Sequence record: PV785814.1
Length of the DNA stretch: 64,000 nt
Strand: one strand, 5' to 3'
In this document: piece by piece, positions 2,471 through 7,786 of the stretch
Layout: each line of letters begins with the position of its first letter
Numbering within the stretch: position 1 is the first letter of the stretch
Translations under genes and position numbers: made by a program
The notes under the pieces: model-generated
Told to the model about the DNA's origin: nothing
The model's input: only the letters and a program-made list of their open reading frames with translations
The model's database searches: none

Positions 2471-3001
2471 TTAGGTGATGGGTGTGATTGTTACTTCTTT
2501 GCCATCTACTTTATGAACCATTTCAAAGTAAGCGTATTCAAACTCAACATCACATGTAACTGTTTCAACGTCACCTGATTCTGTGTAGTTCCATTCGATT
2601 GCACTTAATGACTTTGGGAACGCATTGATAAAGCGATACGTAGCAACAGTCTTTTCTTTGTTATTGTCTAGAACATGTAGCAATAGAGTTACTGGAACTT
2701 TACCATCACTGTTACTGGGACCAATAGGGTTATTCATGGTGATTAACCACTTGTATAACTCAGCGTAAGTCCTCATTTCTTCATCGACTAGAAACTGAAT
2801 TGATAAGTCATCGTACGAAGTGCCTGAACCTGCTATGTTGTTGTTAGCTAGTTTGGCGTACTTTGAACCACGACTTATACTTGCAATTTCCATATTAACA
2901 CCCGGGATAGTGGCAGTTTGAATCTGCCACTGAAACGTTTCCGTTGCCCCGTTGTCTGGTATGTCGATTCGGAAGTTATTCTTCATCGTCAAGTTTTTCA
3001 T
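2471..3001 (-). CDS. 3: gp3 tail tube terminator
   Basis: NNFRIDIPD...FQWQIQTATIPGV, YDDLSIQFLVDEEMRTYAELYKWL, F-x-NAFP motifs. Confidence 0.88.
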   Translation of the reverse strand: MKNLTMKNNFRIDIPDNGATETFQWQIQTATIPGVNMEIASISRGSKYAKLANNNIAGSGTSYDDLSIQFLVDEEMRTYAELYKWLITMNNPIGPSNSDGKVPVTLLLHVLDNNKEKTVATYRFINAFPKSLSAIEWNYTESGDVETVTCDVEFEYAYFEMVHKVDGKEVTITPIT

Positions 3002-4959
3002 TAGTTGAACGTACCTCTTGTAGTTGGCATCTTAGCTTCGCCACCTGTAGTTAATGGTCTGGTGAAGTTCGTTGTATTCTGAACTGTGCTTACAGCGTTG
3101 TTAACAAAGTTCGAACCGACTTCTTTCGATTGCTGTGCTGCTCTGAATGCTGCTTCACGCGCTGCGACTGCTTCTAAGATTACTGAACGCTTGATCTCTT
3201 GGAATGGCTTGATAATCCCTTCGTCGATCATACGTTGTCTCTCAGCAGCAACAATGGCGTCTTCTTCCATTTGCTTCTTCTCAACTTCAGCAGCTAAGAA
3301 TCTGTCAAGTGTTTCGGCAGATGATGCAAGACGTTTAGCTGGATCTTTAACTGCATCCATCACACCCTTAGCACCGTCTACAACGCTCTGTGCTGCGTTC
3401 TTAGCACCGTCTGCGATTGCATCCCCAGCTTTCCCTAGGTAGTTAGTTTGATAGCGTTCAGTCAGTCTAGCGTTAACTTCTGACTTGTCGGCATCTAGCT
3501 TCCCTCGTTCAGCCGATAGCTTGTCTTTGCCTAGCATTTCTGGTCTATCAACACCTGGGATCCAGTCGATAATGCTACCAGCCATTTCTTTGATGTTTAA
3601 CATCAAGTTCTGAATTGATAACATAAGCAATCTGAACGAGTCAGGGATAGACAAGAAACTTGCAATCACGCTGTTAATCGCGTTCACGTACATATTGAAT
3701 GCTTTCTGAACAAACGAAGTTAGCTTCTGGAAGCCAGCAACTACGCCTTCGACTGCACCTTCAGGTATTGCTTCTTCAATACTCTCACCGACACCACCAA
3801 ACCAGTTCGAAATGCTCTGAATTACGCCATTAAACCAGTTCGAGACCATTGCAAACAATGCGGCTCGTTTTTCAGGGTCTGAGAATATGCTTTTCAGTGC
3901 TACGAAAATTCGGTCAATTTCTTCTTCGAATAGCTTGTAAATACCATAACCTGCAAGCATACCAATCAACGCAACTGGGTTTAGCATAATGCCAATCATT
4001 CGACCTAGACCTAAGAACAGTCTTTTCACGACGAACATCATCCAGCCTTTAACAGTACCTGACATGTCAGTTGCTAGAGCTTGAATTATGTTACCCGTCC
4101 CTTTACCGAATTTACCAAATCCGAGCAAGATCGTTGATGCTATACGTCCTAGTGCGCCGAATTTTGATGCTGCCATAGAAGCATTGGCTAACGATGTTGA
4201 TAGAAGTATTGCTTGTCCGCCTAAGAATCCCACAAATGCACCAAACAGTTTGAATACTTTAGCAATCCACCCTAGTTTCTGACCGATCAGGTGTGTGGCA
4301 ATTCGCTTCAAGTCTTTTGCTTGGTTTCGTTGAACTTTCATGTTCTCTTTGTAACGATGAAGTTCAGTTTTTCGATTTCGAGTTTCGGTTACTACTTGAT
4401 ACGCAAATATCTTCTTGTACAACGCGCTTATAAAGCCCACAGTAAGCGGTGAGTTATTACCCGCACCATTCGTCAAGAAACTATTCAAATCATCAGCAGC
4501 CGTCTTCTGAAGCCCGATAACGCGCTTCATGTCGTTGACTCTGAAAATCAGACGTTCAAACCAACGAGTAAACCCCTCCTGCATACGTGCGAACTGCATT
4601 TTTGCAGTCAAGTGCATTTCTTGAATGCCACGGTTGATTCTATTCAGATGTCCTTTAAAGTCTAACGTCGTTTTGATAACATCAGTAAGTGATATAATCG
4701 CAGCACGAACTTTATTAGATGTCTGATCAAAGTTTTCAATAACACGCTGAAACAGACCTTTTTGCTGTGCTACTGCTTTTTCATTTGTTTTAAACACCGA
4801 CTGCATAGTTTCGAGCATCGACGTGGTTGTAATATCAATGTTACTGATATGACGAGCCACGCGCTGCATCGTATAAACTTCAGGTCGGTCTTCTTGTTGA
4901 AGAATGATATGGTCTAATCTTCCGATTATCTCATTCATCTTCTTGTCGTCAGCCGCCAT
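3001..4959 (-). CDS. 29: gp29-like baseplate hub / tape measure protein
   Basis: 652 aa, helical and Ala/Gly-rich with hydrophobic stretches; directly downstream of 26/51. Confidence 0.7.
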   Translation of the reverse strand: MAADDKKMNEIIGRLDHIILQQEDRPEVYTMQRVARHISNIDITTTSMLETMQSVFKTNEKAVAQQKGLFQRVIENFDQTSNKVRAAIISLTDVIKTTLDFKGHLNRINRGIQEMHLTAKMQFARMQEGFTRWFERLIFRVNDMKRVIGLQKTAADDLNSFLTNGAGNNSPLTVGFISALYKKIFAYQVVTETRNRKTELHRYKENMKVQRNQAKDLKRIATHLIGQKLGWIAKVFKLFGAFVGFLGGQAILLSTSLANASMAASKFGALGRIASTILLGFGKFGKGTGNIIQALATDMSGTVKGWMMFVVKRLFLGLGRMIGIMLNPVALIGMLAGYGIYKLFEEEIDRIFVALKSIFSDPEKRAALFAMVSNWFNGVIQSISNWFGGVGESIEEAIPEGAVEGVVAGFQKLTSFVQKAFNMYVNAINSVIASFLSIPDSFRLLMLSIQNLMLNIKEMAGSIIDWIPGVDRPEMLGKDKLSAERGKLDADKSEVNARLTERYQTNYLGKAGDAIADGAKNAAQSVVDGAKGVMDAVKDPAKRLASSAETLDRFLAAEVEKKQMEEDAIVAAERQRMIDEGIIKPFQEIKRSVILEAVAAREAAFRAAQQSKEVGSNFVNNAVSTVQNTTNFTRPLTTGGEAKMPTTRGTFN

Positions 4960-5126
4960 TATTGTTGTTCCTTATTCTTTTCTTGGATGTAATGTATAAG
5001 CTGTGCGGCATAGATTTCACGCTCGAATAGAACCATTGTTTCTAAATCGTGAAGAGAGAAATTGCCATGAGTGATCATGGCAAAGTTTTCTTTGTAATAC
5101 TCTTCAAGTGAGTATCTACCGAGCAT
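4959..5126 (-). CDS. 51: gp51-like hub assembly protein (55 aa; possibly also the C-terminus of a gp26 frameshift product)
   Basis: SLEEYYKENF..HGNFSLHDLETMVLFEREIY motif; ATG overlaps gp26 stop (TAATG). Confidence 0.75.
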   Translation of the reverse strand: MLGRYSLEEYYKENFAMITHGNFSLHDLETMVLFEREIYAAQLIHYIQEKNKEQQ

Positions 5127-5974
5127 TATACGAAAAAATCTTCGATGCCTCGTAGGGTTACTTTCTCGTGGTTGCCACACTTCGGACATTTAACGTCAAT
5201 GTGTGATGTCACACGTGGTACAGAATCAACAAACGTTTGTACTTTCTTGAATGCTGCCGTGTCAAGTTCGCCCATGATGTTGACTAGCTGATTCTGGGCT
5301 TCTAGTTCTTCTTTGGTGTATACAGTATCACCAACGTGAACTTCTTTGATCGCAGCAACTGCAATGTTGAACAACCCTTGTGGTGTATTTGGGTCGTTGT
5401 TCTCGTACACGCGAATAGTTGGGTGTTGCAACTTAATCACAACGCGAGGGTTGACTTTAACAAAGTCTTCGCCTTTATATTCTGGTACGAATGCAGATTT
5501 CAAGTCGATGTTTGTTGTAATTCGTTCACCACACAGATGTTTTTCTGGTGCAAATACAGATTCGATTGCTTCTTCGTCTGATTGATTCATGATCTCAGCG
5601 AAGATGTCATCGGCAGATTTTTCAAGCTCTGCTTCTTCCTCTTGAGAAAGTTTCTGAAGCTCTTCTTCTGGCTTATCTGCACAGCAGTTGTATTCAGCTT
5701 GAATGCTAGTTACACCATTGCTGTTCATGTACATGTGCAAGAACAGATATTCAGCATCACCAACAGTCAGTTCGTCCATGTTGATGTCAGAAACAATACA
5801 GTTTTCAAGACATTGTTCGATTGCGTCTATCTTTTCATCGGATTCATTTGCGATTAGCAATGCCTTGTGTTCTTTTGCAAGCATTGCACGCAGTTTAATT
5901 TCTTCACCAGTTGATGGTAATTTTACAGTATATTGTGGCGCAGCTAGTACGCTAATATCAAATGTTTTGGTCAT
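5126..5974 (-). CDS. 26: gp26 baseplate hub assembly protein
   Basis: PQYTVKLPSTGEEIKLRAMLAKEHK; LTVGDAEYLFL; C-terminal CPKC...LRGIEDFF. Confidence 0.85.
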   Translation of the reverse strand: MTKTFDISVLAAPQYTVKLPSTGEEIKLRAMLAKEHKALLIANESDEKIDAIEQCLENCIVSDINMDELTVGDAEYLFLHMYMNSNGVTSIQAEYNCCADKPEEELQKLSQEEEAELEKSADDIFAEIMNQSDEEAIESVFAPEKHLCGERITTNIDLKSAFVPEYKGEDFVKVNPRVVIKLQHPTIRVYENNDPNTPQGLFNIAVAAIKEVHVGDTVYTKEELEAQNQLVNIMGELDTAAFKKVQTFVDSVPRVTSHIDVKCPKCGNHEKVTLRGIEDFFV

Positions 5975-5984
5975 GATGTTTACC

Positions 5985-6731
5985 TTAGAATAGACCTGAA
6001 ATCAATTCAGTGCCTGTATTGAAAAAGCTGTTATATGTTTTCTCGAATTTCTGAGTAATACCCAAAGCATCCGAGACTGTGCTTGATAAATCTTCAGTCA
6101 TATATGATGCACTTTCATACACAAATTCAACTTCAAATTCAGCGACCGCGTTGTTGTTTTCGTAACCTAATTGAACCCCACCAACACGAATCGGAAACGC
6201 ATTTTTAAGACTGGTCATTGTTACCATGTCAGCGTTTCGGTCGTACGTGTAGATCTCGATTGTACGAGCATAGTTAGAGAAGAATCCGACTTGTGCTGAA
6301 TCATTCGCGTAGATCTGTTTAAACCAACCTAGAAGCATCTTACGCTCTGGGTGAGTTGGTGACAAATACAACGACATTGTAACCGTCTCATCGGTCTTTG
6401 CTTTGACTACGTGATGCGGTCTGCGACGTGTCTTATCAACGTCTGTTTCGTACGACGAACCTGGGATGTTGACTGATTTAACCATCATCCCTATATTTCG
6501 TTCAAACTCAAACCCAGATCCGAATAGCGAAGCAGTTGAAGCAAGGGCATCTTGCACACCGACACCCTTAATGTCACTGAAATCGGCGTTCAAGAATGAT
6601 TCGCCGGTATTCATGACTTGCTTTGCTGTATCTTGCAGCGATGCAAATCGCACCGCATACAAGTTTTGTCTTGCTAAGTCGTTCTTCGTGATGTGAGATA
6701 AGAACTTCTTAACATCTATTCCGATTGCCAT
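5985..6731 (-). CDS. 54: gp54 baseplate tail tube initiator
   Basis: DLARQNLYAVRF start; gp19-like tube fold motifs (LKNAFPIRVG, AEFEVEF). Confidence 0.82.
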   Translation of the reverse strand: MAIGIDVKKFLSHITKNDLARQNLYAVRFASLQDTAKQVMNTGESFLNADFSDIKGVGVQDALASTASLFGSGFEFERNIGMMVKSVNIPGSSYETDVDKTRRRPHHVVKAKTDETVTMSLYLSPTHPERKMLLGWFKQIYANDSAQVGFFSNYARTIEIYTYDRNADMVTMTSLKNAFPIRVGGVQLGYENNNAVAEFEVEFVYESASYMTEDLSSTVSDALGITQKFEKTYNSFFNTGTELISGLF

Positions 6732-6734
6732 TCG

Positions 6735-7331
6735 TTATCTCCTTCTATAACGATCATCGTACGCACGAACAGCAGAAATGTTGCGACCATTTTTGGCAAC
6801 GAATTGTTGCAATGGCATGTGAATAACGTTGTACCAGTCATGTGGTTTAACTTCTTCAAGCGAACCTTTGATGCGCTTTAGAATGTACAATTTCACCATA
6901 TGTTTACTGAATTTAATGTTTTTCACTCGACCCCAGTCAATCATAAGCTTCGTGGAGTTGCTAACTGTTTTCGTGTTTGCGAATCTTAGTAATGTAGTTA
7001 AAAATTTCTCGCGATCTTTGGGCGGGATGTAATGCAAGTTCAAACCAAGCATATATCCCTTTTGTTGCCCCAAGCATATGATACATGGGAACTTATCCCA
7101 ATACGGTAACTGGTGCTTAGTCTTTGCGTCGTACGCGAAAACATACATGTTGCCTTTATGCGGAACTTGCACTTTTCGACTACGAATTGCGTCATGAACT
7201 CGCTTTTTAAACCACGCTAGTGATTTTCGCTGATTCTTTGCAATTGGAGTACGACCAAGCTCATGAGTTTGAGCTTGAAAGCTGGCAAGAAGACTCTCTT
7301 TTTTCTTCGGTGATCTATCTGTTCTAGCCAT
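6735..7331 (-). CDS. 2: gp2 DNA end protector protein
   Basis: YDAKTKHQLPYWDKFP, GLNLHYIPPK, VKLYI motifs. Confidence 0.92.
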   Translation of the reverse strand: MARTDRSPKKKESLLASFQAQTHELGRTPIAKNQRKSLAWFKKRVHDAIRSRKVQVPHKGNMYVFAYDAKTKHQLPYWDKFPCIICLGQQKGYMLGLNLHYIPPKDREKFLTTLLRFANTKTVSNSTKLMIDWGRVKNIKFSKHMVKLYILKRIKGSLEEVKPHDWYNVIHMPLQQFVAKNGRNISAVRAYDDRYRRR

Positions 7332-7786
7332 TACACTCTCAATCCTATTAGTTTTCTAAGCCCGACTTCAGTCAGAACTTTGAAATGCCACCCTTTTTGT
7401 TTAGCGAACTTAATCGCAGCAGCCCACTTATCTTGGTTCACTTGAAACGTATATATCTCTTTCAATAAACGCTTCTTTGACTTTTCAGTAAGTCTTTGTG
7501 GCTTCTCGGGTGGCATCGTTTCTTTGTTTGGTTTGATCTCGAAAATGAATTCTCGACCGTCACTGAACTTCACATAAAAGTCCATGAAATATCTACGTTT
7601 TTTACCACCATCAGCCGAGCTAACGTAAGGTATAACGATTTCTTCAGAATTCCAACGAACAACATGCGGGTTGTTGTCACACCAGCGCATGAAAGACAAT
7701 TCCCATGAGCTTCTGTACTCGATCTTCTGATAATTGCCTTTGTACTTCGATTTGTTTGCTGGAACGTATTTGCCAGAATATGCCAT
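7331..7786 (-). CDS. 4: gp4 head completion nuclease
   Basis: AYSGKY.P.NKSKYKG, YRSSWE, RRYFMDF, EIKP motifs. Confidence 0.95.
   Translation of the reverse strand: MAYSGKYVPANKSKYKGNYQKIEYRSSWELSFMRWCDNNPHVVRWNSEEIVIPYVSSADGGKKRRYFMDFYVKFSDGREFIFEIKPNKETMPPEKPQRLTEKSKKRLLKEIYTFQVNQDKWAAAIKFAKQKGWHFKVLTEVGLRKLIGLRV

Follow-up and report, generated by a model that had tools for sequence, protein, structure and literature searches.

A conserved in-phase slippery heptamer and a predicted −1 ribosomal frameshift at the end of gene 26 in a KVP40-like phage and its relatives

What is the short open reading frame (ORF) that follows gene 26 in KVP40-like phages, and how would ribosomes come to translate it? 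The question arises at a tail gene locus in a 64,000-nucleotide (nt) stretch of sequence record PV785814.1 (hereafter the window), which over the 2 kb tested (positions 4500–6500) is 100% identical to the KVP40-like Vibrio phage QD01 (Straboviridae). The minus strand here carries gene 26, a T-rich heptamer at its 3′ end, an ORF in the −1 frame annotated as a ‘baseplate hub assembly catalyst’ of 55 amino acids (aa; 5126..4959) and neighbouring tail genes. An interpretation made earlier from the letters of the window and their translations (the sequence-only reading) had placed a −1 slippery site at the end of gp26, joining it to gp51. The site was found as it had been written, on the minus strand, which has to be added to the description, and comparison with relatives leads us to put the probability of a programmed −1 ribosomal frameshift site in gene 26 of this KVP40-like phage at roughly 85%.

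Gene 26 (5126..5974, minus strand) encodes in its zero frame a protein of 282 aa, the candidate hub assembly chaperone and ‘G-like’ product of the locus. The protein belongs to PF12322 (T4_baseplate, the gp26/gp51 family; E=3.6e-48, 164.6 bits against a cut-off of 24.5, residues 13–281) and also matches phrog_150 (E=2.5e-53). The 3′ end of the gene reads GAA GAT TTT TTC GTA TAA, so that T_TTT_TTC lies at 5138..5132 in the zero-frame phase X_XXY_YYZ, with the TAA stop (5126..5128) one codon past it. From base 5132 the −1 frame is open for 57 codons and closes at its own stop (4961..4959). This extension (4959..5132, minus strand), the ‘T-like’ part of the locus, matches phrog_634 (E=3e-20) and contains the annotated 55-aa ORF. 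A −1 shift therefore does lead from the heptamer through the small ORF to 4959, as had been read; what had been called the gp51 ORF is homologous to gp51, but corresponds merely to the C-terminal ~40–55 residues of T4 gp51 and not to the whole protein.

We infer both the slip and its efficiency as follows. Most ribosomes would read T_TTT_TTC and one further codon before terminating, releasing the 282-aa gp26, whereas a minority would slip back one base on the heptamer, with both Phe-tRNAs re-pairing with UUU in the manner expected from the established X_XXY_YYZ model. Shifted ribosomes would then translate 57 codons of the −1 frame, starting at base 5132, and complete a protein of ~338 aa, in which the gp26 body is followed by a helical extension of the Gp51_C type. 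The two products, made in a fixed low ratio, would serve as a chaperone pair for assembly of the hub and the tape measure.

The heptamer by itself was rejected as evidence. TTTTTTC occurs 10 times on the two strands of the window, compared with 22.7 ± 5.4 times in dinucleotide-preserving shuffles, and is if anything depleted, an under-representation that is consistent with a general avoidance of slippery runs. Because the count within the window is no higher than chance, the weight of the evidence lies in conservation among relatives. Junctions were gathered with single-protein queries from annotated phage records (KVP40, D479, Aeromonas phages 65 and PX29, Synechococcus phage syn9, Methylophilales phage Melnitz, Stenotrophomonas phage Moby, Pseudomonas phage pf16, Cronobacter phage LPCS28, Rhizobium phage IG49 and Ralstonia phage RSP15), from 80 cyanophage-type IMG/VR contigs and from a few metagenome contigs. 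A first survey covered 92 loci with 86 distinct junctions, and six further lineages brought the distinct junctions to 92.

In all 92 distinct junctions, which come from very divergent lineages, T_TTT_TT[C/T] is in frame and its phase is identical. The distance from heptamer to stop is exactly one codon in 92/92 loci of the first survey and 0–2 codons in the six extra lineages, the exceptions to a single codon being Melnitz (0 codons), IG49 (2) and one further locus, L113 (8). Across the distinct junctions, third-codon-position entropy falls to 0, 0 and 0.30 bits at the three codons of the heptamer, compared with 1.0–1.9 bits at neighbouring conserved codons, where a Gly (1.94) and a Leu (1.62) are nearly saturated. 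The codon preceding the Phe pair encodes Ser, Asp, Asn, Ala or other residues, yet its third base is T in 92/92, and the last base of the heptamer is C in 87/92, such that the site reads TTT-TTC. Phe-Phe pairs at other positions of gene 26 use TTC-TTT 65 times, TTT-TTT 32 times and TTT-TTC once. The sequence-only reading had named synonymous changes that break the T-run in relatives as the observation that would count against it; the run is instead kept in every distinct junction while neighbouring synonymous sites vary.

The run also outlasts change in the amino acids that it encodes. Phe-Phe is invariant in the gp26 protein alignment; in the wider family, 36 of 166 proteins lack a terminal Phe-Phe followed by 0–3 residues, and many of those 36 end in Phe-Leu. 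PF12322 as a whole is far larger, with 2465 clusters at E≤0.001 in a representative search. DNA was retrieved for four of the 36 variants, of which three, all metagenomic, keep the run as T_TTT_TTA or T_TTT_TTG (Phe-Leu) or as T_TTT_TTT, differing from T_TTT_TTC solely at the last base; the T_TTT_TTT variant has 8 more zero-frame codons before its stop. The fourth, on metagenome contig L114 (gene at 1201–1983), is a gp26-family gene with neither a T-run nor an extension ORF in any frame, and it is followed directly by a long gene of tape-measure size. This lineage either dispenses with the gp51-like part or encodes it elsewhere.

In every lineage surveyed, conservation of the −1-frame peptide begins at its first codon, and the first ATG of the −1 ORF lies anywhere between codon 2 and codon 33. 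ATG, GTG and TTG are absent from the first 8 codons in 28 of the 86 distinct junctions of the first survey, and from the first 18 codons in 21 of them. Among the cyanophage-type junctions (n=77), the −1 frame is open in 77/77, the zero frame is closed in 77/77 and the +1 frame is closed in 72/77, and 25 junctions have no start within the first 8 codons. Over the start-less stretch of these 25, codon periodicity in the −1 frame sets in at the heptamer (entropy of 0.76, 0.56 and 1.26 by codon position), and amino-acid identity is 0.67, compared with 0.65 over the rest of the ORF. A −1-frame stop two codons 5′ of the first post-heptamer codon occurs in D479, Aeromonas phage 65 and PX29, which leaves only the heptamer and the next codon for the change of frame.

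The alternative that survives best, though we consider it improbable, involves no frameshift at all: the small ORF would be a gene of its own, with coupled translation or reinitiation at the ATG of a TAATG overlap yielding a free 55-aa gp51-like protein, and the T-run would be incidental. The window does have such an ATG (5124..5126, minus strand), the annotated start of the 55-aa ORF, and it overlaps the gene 26 stop in QD01, KVP40 and K567. The small ORF is annotated as a separate gene in every public record examined, and TAATG overlaps are common in the tail gene block of the window, including the one in which the next gene, of 652 aa, starts at 4959. However, the overlapping ATG is confined to the KVP40 clade. 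It is absent from D479 (whose gp26 is 50% identical), Aeromonas phage 65, syn9, pf16, LPCS28 and IG49, all of which lack ATG, GTG and TTG in the first 8 codons (apart from a TTG at codon 8 in syn9, whose −1 ORF has no ATG earlier than codon 19), and from many cyanophage contigs, and the start-less junctions nevertheless conserve the peptide with coding periodicity from the heptamer onwards. A separate gene also leaves unaccounted for the frozen synonymous sites of the heptamer, as well as the fusion of the extension to a gp26-like body in T4-type gp51. An independent start could nonetheless operate alongside frameshifting in the KVP40 clade.

Public annotations of the extension are uneven, with a stub of 26–47 aa starting 48–90 nt past gene 26 in D479, Aeromonas phage 65 and syn9, and no gene called in LPCS28 or at loci L112 and L113. 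One IMG/VR contig (L090; 233,234 bp) encodes a gp26 with 80% identity to its PX29 counterpart, and its −1 ORF has no ATG until codon 18. A comparative study reported gp51 to be missing only in Aeromonas phage Aeh1 (Sullivan et al. 2010, PMC3037559); if this contig is Aeh1-like, the ‘missing’ gp51 of Aeh1 may be a start-less frameshift ORF.

T4-type phages offer a natural comparison, as they would reach the same end state without frameshifting, by way of two paralogous genes, of which 26 encodes the body alone and 51 the body together with the extension. In T2, JK32 and CkP1, gene 26 is followed by gene 25, and gene 51 is separate, divergently transcribed and encodes 249–257 aa. Gene 26 of these three phages ends in Phe-Phe or Phe-Leu written TTC TTT or TTT CTG, with no T-run, and one relative (L104) has an out-of-phase TTT TTT directly followed by a −1 stop. 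T2 gp51 matches PF12322 over residues 1–201 (E=4e-55) and phrog_634 over residues 147–246, and the small ORF of the window matches the distal part of phrog_634. By hhalign, the gp26 family aligns to residues 7–185 of T2 gp51 (E=2e-5) and a set of 28 −1-frame peptides aligns to residues 205–244 (E=2e-5), while T2 gp26 and T2 gp51 are similar to each other by BLASTP (E=1e-5). Precomputed Pfam matches give T4-type gp51 the architecture PF12322 + PF28602 (‘Gp51_C’). The 55-aa ORF gave no significant hit when compared directly with T2 gp51 by BLASTP, and no precomputed Pfam match is listed for that ORF; its homology to the C-terminal domain of T4-type gp51 (Gp51_C/phrog_634) is visible by profiles only.

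The predicted frameshift product is thus collinear with T4-type gp51, for which the natural in-frame protein served as the full-length comparator. Its AlphaFold model (mean predicted local distance difference test score (pLDDT) 92, predicted template modelling score 0.87) shows four confident helices (residues 196–249) after a gp26-like body. The parallel with T4 and T2 extends to both parts, as the gp26 proteins of the window and of T2 both belong to PF12322 and the −1 ORF is homologous to Gp51_C. The two systems differ in their genetics: the T4-type pair comes from separate, divergently transcribed genes without a slippery run, whereas the pair in the window would come from one gene by recoding.

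The same extended protein could also arise by transcriptional slippage, in which RNA polymerase adds one U on the T-run and a minority of messages carry the two ORFs in a single frame. Every junction has a homopolymeric run of 6–7 T's, and comparative sequence cannot fully separate two mechanisms that end in the same protein, but we regard slippage by the polymerase as quite unlikely, more so than a separate gene. The run is short, and efficient transcriptional slippage in bacteria usually needs ~9 or more identical bases. The last base is C in 87/92 junctions although a synonymous T would lengthen the run, and the run always begins in the X_XXY_YYZ phase from the third base of a variable codon, a property that matters to tRNA re-pairing and not to a polymerase. 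A Shine–Dalgarno (SD)-like element moreover lies upstream, at the distance known to stimulate −1 ribosomal frameshifting in dnaX. Least credible is that the run is a functionless by-product of a conserved Phe-Phe C-terminus and AT-rich codon usage, for although the Phe pair is invariant, TTT is the commoner Phe codon (624 TTT vs 300 TTC) and TTTTTTC is not over-represented in the window, T4-type gp26 keeps Phe-Phe as TTC TTT, the variable codon before the pair always ends in T, variants exchange Phe for Leu yet retain the run, and L114, the sole sampled lineage without the extension, is also without the run.

Ribosomal frameshifting at the heptamer thereby remains the explanation that we favour, and a number of points weigh against it. 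The frameshift product and its abundance are predictions. The junctions are phylogenetically related and 77 of the 92 are cyanophage-type, so that the counts represent non-independent events. Relatives among the Ackermannviridae carry the extension in the −1 frame without the canonical heptamer. The overlapping ATG of the KVP40 clade leaves room there for a free 55-aa protein, in addition to the extended product or in place of it. The elements that might stimulate a slip are equivocal, gp26 resembles none of the known tail assembly chaperones in the searches described below, and the identity of the downstream gene as the tape measure is weakly supported.

Two junctions of these Ackermannviridae relatives, both with the homologous extension in the −1 frame, are recorded here in their own right. 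In Escherichia phage ECML-4 (L096; gp26-like stop ending at 2741) the end of the gene reads GAA ATT TTC ATT TAA, with no in-phase X_XXY_YYZ; the −1 frame opens just 4 codons before the stop and the extension has no annotated ORF. In Vibrio phage VAP7 (L098; gp26-like stop ending at 2723) it reads GTT TTT CGC TAA, with an ATG overlapping the stop and again no in-phase X_XXY_YYZ.

In the window, an SD-like GAGG (5148..5151, minus strand) lies 9 nt upstream of the heptamer, formed by conserved Glu-Gly codons, and is a possible stimulator of frameshifting. SD-like matches of 4 nt or more occur in the 15 nt preceding the heptamer at 86/92 junctions, compared with 39% of control windows, and the Glu codon within the motif is GAG in 62% of cases, compared with 31% elsewhere in gene 26. 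The coincidence of the motif with conserved Glu-Gly codons means that this enrichment may in part be a protein-level effect, and because of this overlap we take a stimulatory role for GAGG as suggestive only.

Downstream of the heptamer, RNAalifold predicted no pairs across 32 cyanophage junctions, giving no conserved RNA structure in the cyanophage clade. Lambda G/T is likewise not known to have a conserved downstream RNA structure, but its absence from gene 26 takes away one kind of evidence that might have favoured a slip. The 80-nt stretch at 5131..5052 of the window folds with z=−3.8, but this local fold is not shared by other lineages, and downstream RNA structure was rejected as a feature of the family. 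A GC-rich hairpin of 9 bp lies at ~5062–5083 (minus strand), inside the −1 ORF and ~50 nt past the heptamer. The closest mechanistic comparison is Escherichia coli dnaX, where −1 frameshifting takes place at A_AAA_AAG with an upstream Shine–Dalgarno-like element and a downstream hairpin. The gene 26 site shares with dnaX a heptamer suited to tandem slippage and an SD-like element ~9–10 nt upstream, a position at which such elements are enriched in the gene 26 family. It differs in the sequence of the heptamer, in having no conserved downstream hairpin and in the outcome, as the shifted product of dnaX is the shorter one whereas that predicted for gene 26 is the longer.

Why should a hub gene carry such a site? 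Tail assembly chaperone pairs made by programmed −1 frameshifting are known from lambda (gpG/gpGT) and P2 (gpE/gpE+E′), in gene orders V-G-T-H and FII-E-E′-T respectively, and a −1 frameshift conserved in tail assembly of phages such as lambda and P2 was reportedly described by Xu, Hendrix and Duda (Mol Cell, 2004). The gene 26 locus has the organisation of a G/GT module: two overlapping ORFs lie between a tube-type gene and a gene of tape-measure size (whose identity as tape measure is weak), the upstream ORF has an in-phase X_XXY_YYZ close to its 3′ end, and the downstream one occupies the −1 frame. As in lambda and P2, the signal is kept across lineages in which the proteins have strongly diverged, and is conserved independently of the protein (92/92), while the downstream ORF often lacks a start of its own (28/86); a short product and a C-terminally extended minority product are likewise predicted from the gene 26 sequence. 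The T4 counterparts are also assembly factors: in reviews of T4, gp26 and gp51 appear among the hub assembly chaperones, and gp51 is described as needed for assembly yet absent from the particle (PMC3004832).

The differences are equally clear. The fold of gp26 (PF12322, with probable zinc-binding Cys residues) has no detectable similarity to known chaperone families, T4 genetics places gp26 and gp51 in assembly of the hub rather than the tube, the gene 26 heptamer is T_TTT_TTN with a zero-frame stop almost at once, and one large clade (T4, T2, Krischvirus and others) has two paralogous genes in place of a frameshift. Given that the gene order mirrors that of lambda and P2 and that T4 gp26 and gp51 are listed as hub assembly chaperones, gp26 and its extended form would make a G/GT-like chaperone pair for the hub and the tape measure by analogy of mechanism and not by membership of a family. 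The chaperone pair that the sequence-only reading had proposed holds up to this extent, in its G/GT-type organisation and conserved signal, and without family membership it stands as an analogy. Its comparison of the order 26-51-29 with lambda G-T-H and P2 E-E′-T fares similarly, as the order and its logic are borne out while the gp29 identity of the third gene is weak.

That third gene, of 652 aa (3001..4959, minus strand), is a candidate for the gp29-like tape measure by its position, its size and a weak match to phrog_167 (‘tail length tape measure protein’, E=1e-4). Its identification by Pfam profile or BLAST was negative: the protein gave no match to PF25671 (T4_Tape_measure) even at E≤10, in a scan in which a fragment of T4-type gp29 scored 1e-118, and no similarity to T4-type gp29 by BLASTP. 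Counterparts of the 652-aa gene in other lineages are annotated as lysozyme-like, as glycoside hydrolase 19 or as amidase.

The search for a relative of gp26 among known chaperones was equally negative. A Pfam scan of gp26 from the window returned PF12322 and no tail assembly chaperone family, and a sequence search of the PDB returned no match. The AlphaFold 2 model of gp26 is confident (pLDDT 95), and Foldseek against the PDB gave no significant neighbour, with a best E of 0.31 (TM-score ~0.1) for gp26 and 0.09 for T4-type gp51. In BFVD, every neighbour of the gp26 model is a ‘baseplate hub’ protein; the phages concerned are large myoviruses of great diversity and include Campylobacter phage CP220, Bacillus phage SP-15, Ralstonia phage phiRSL1 and Pseudomonas phage PaBG. 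The structure comparison with tail assembly chaperones that had been proposed as a check was thereby carried out and found no similarity for gp26, and membership of the known chaperone families (lambda gpG-like, P2 gpE-like and Pfam Phage_TAC) was rejected by both sequence and fold. Across 65 family members, C59, C97, C148, C263 and C266 of gp26 are invariant or nearly so, which suggests a zinc ribbon. Residues ~100–145 of KVP40-like gp26 form an acidic, helical insertion of ~40 residues (helices at 103–141) that is absent from the cyanophage and Aeromonas homologues.

A published report of a gene 26/51 frameshift was not found in the full-text literature, a search that took in only a minority of subscription journals, so that an earlier description is possible. 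The first ~200 residues of gp51 are known to be lacking in cyanophages and vibriophages, a fact noted without explanation (PMC3037559). Frameshifting would account for this absence, and also for the stubs of 26–47 aa, or the lack of any gene call, at the extension in several genomes. On balance we think it probable, with less assurance than for the site itself, that a G/GT-type pair, whose fold is unrelated to those of known tail assembly chaperones, operates throughout the T4 superfamily, with the ‘GT’ form existing in most lineages (cyanophages and the KVP40-like, Aeromonas, Stenotrophomonas, Pseudomonas and Rhizobium phages) only as the −1 product of gene 26, and with T4 gp51 being the same molecule encoded as a separate paralogous gene.

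If so, T4-like phages would cease to be an apparent exception to the conserved tail-assembly frameshift, which is found in lambda, P2, Mu and many others and would extend to the T4 superfamily, including the most abundant marine myoviruses. T4 gp51 would gain a molecular reading as a gp26 body with an adaptor tail, a protein required at low abundance and not found in virions. There would be practical consequences for annotation as well, as thousands of genome records would mis-annotate or miss the gp51-like gene; the pattern points to a systematic error, and a ribosomal-slippage product should be annotated for gene 26 in most non-Tevenvirinae T4-like genomes. What the extension does would become directly testable by proteomics and structure prediction.

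The remaining genes of the block, all on the minus strand, complete the order tube paralogue, gene 26, −1 ORF, 652-aa gene and gp3-like gene, an order that is identical in D479, Aeromonas phage 65, PX29 and syn9. Directly upstream of gene 26 lies a paralogue of the tail tube (gp54/gp19-like; 5985..6731) that matches phrog_45 (‘tail tube’, E=1.3e-38) and PF06841, the latter at E=2e-6 and 28.0 bits, marginally under the gathering cut-off of 28.2 bits. Downstream of the tape-measure candidate, a gp3-like tail completion protein with a tube fold (2471..3001) is supported by PF06841 (E=6e-8), phrog_45 and its annotation. Further upstream, at 7331–7786 (minus strand), a gp4-like head completion protein matches the N-terminal domain of TnsA-like endonucleases (PF08722, E=4e-24).

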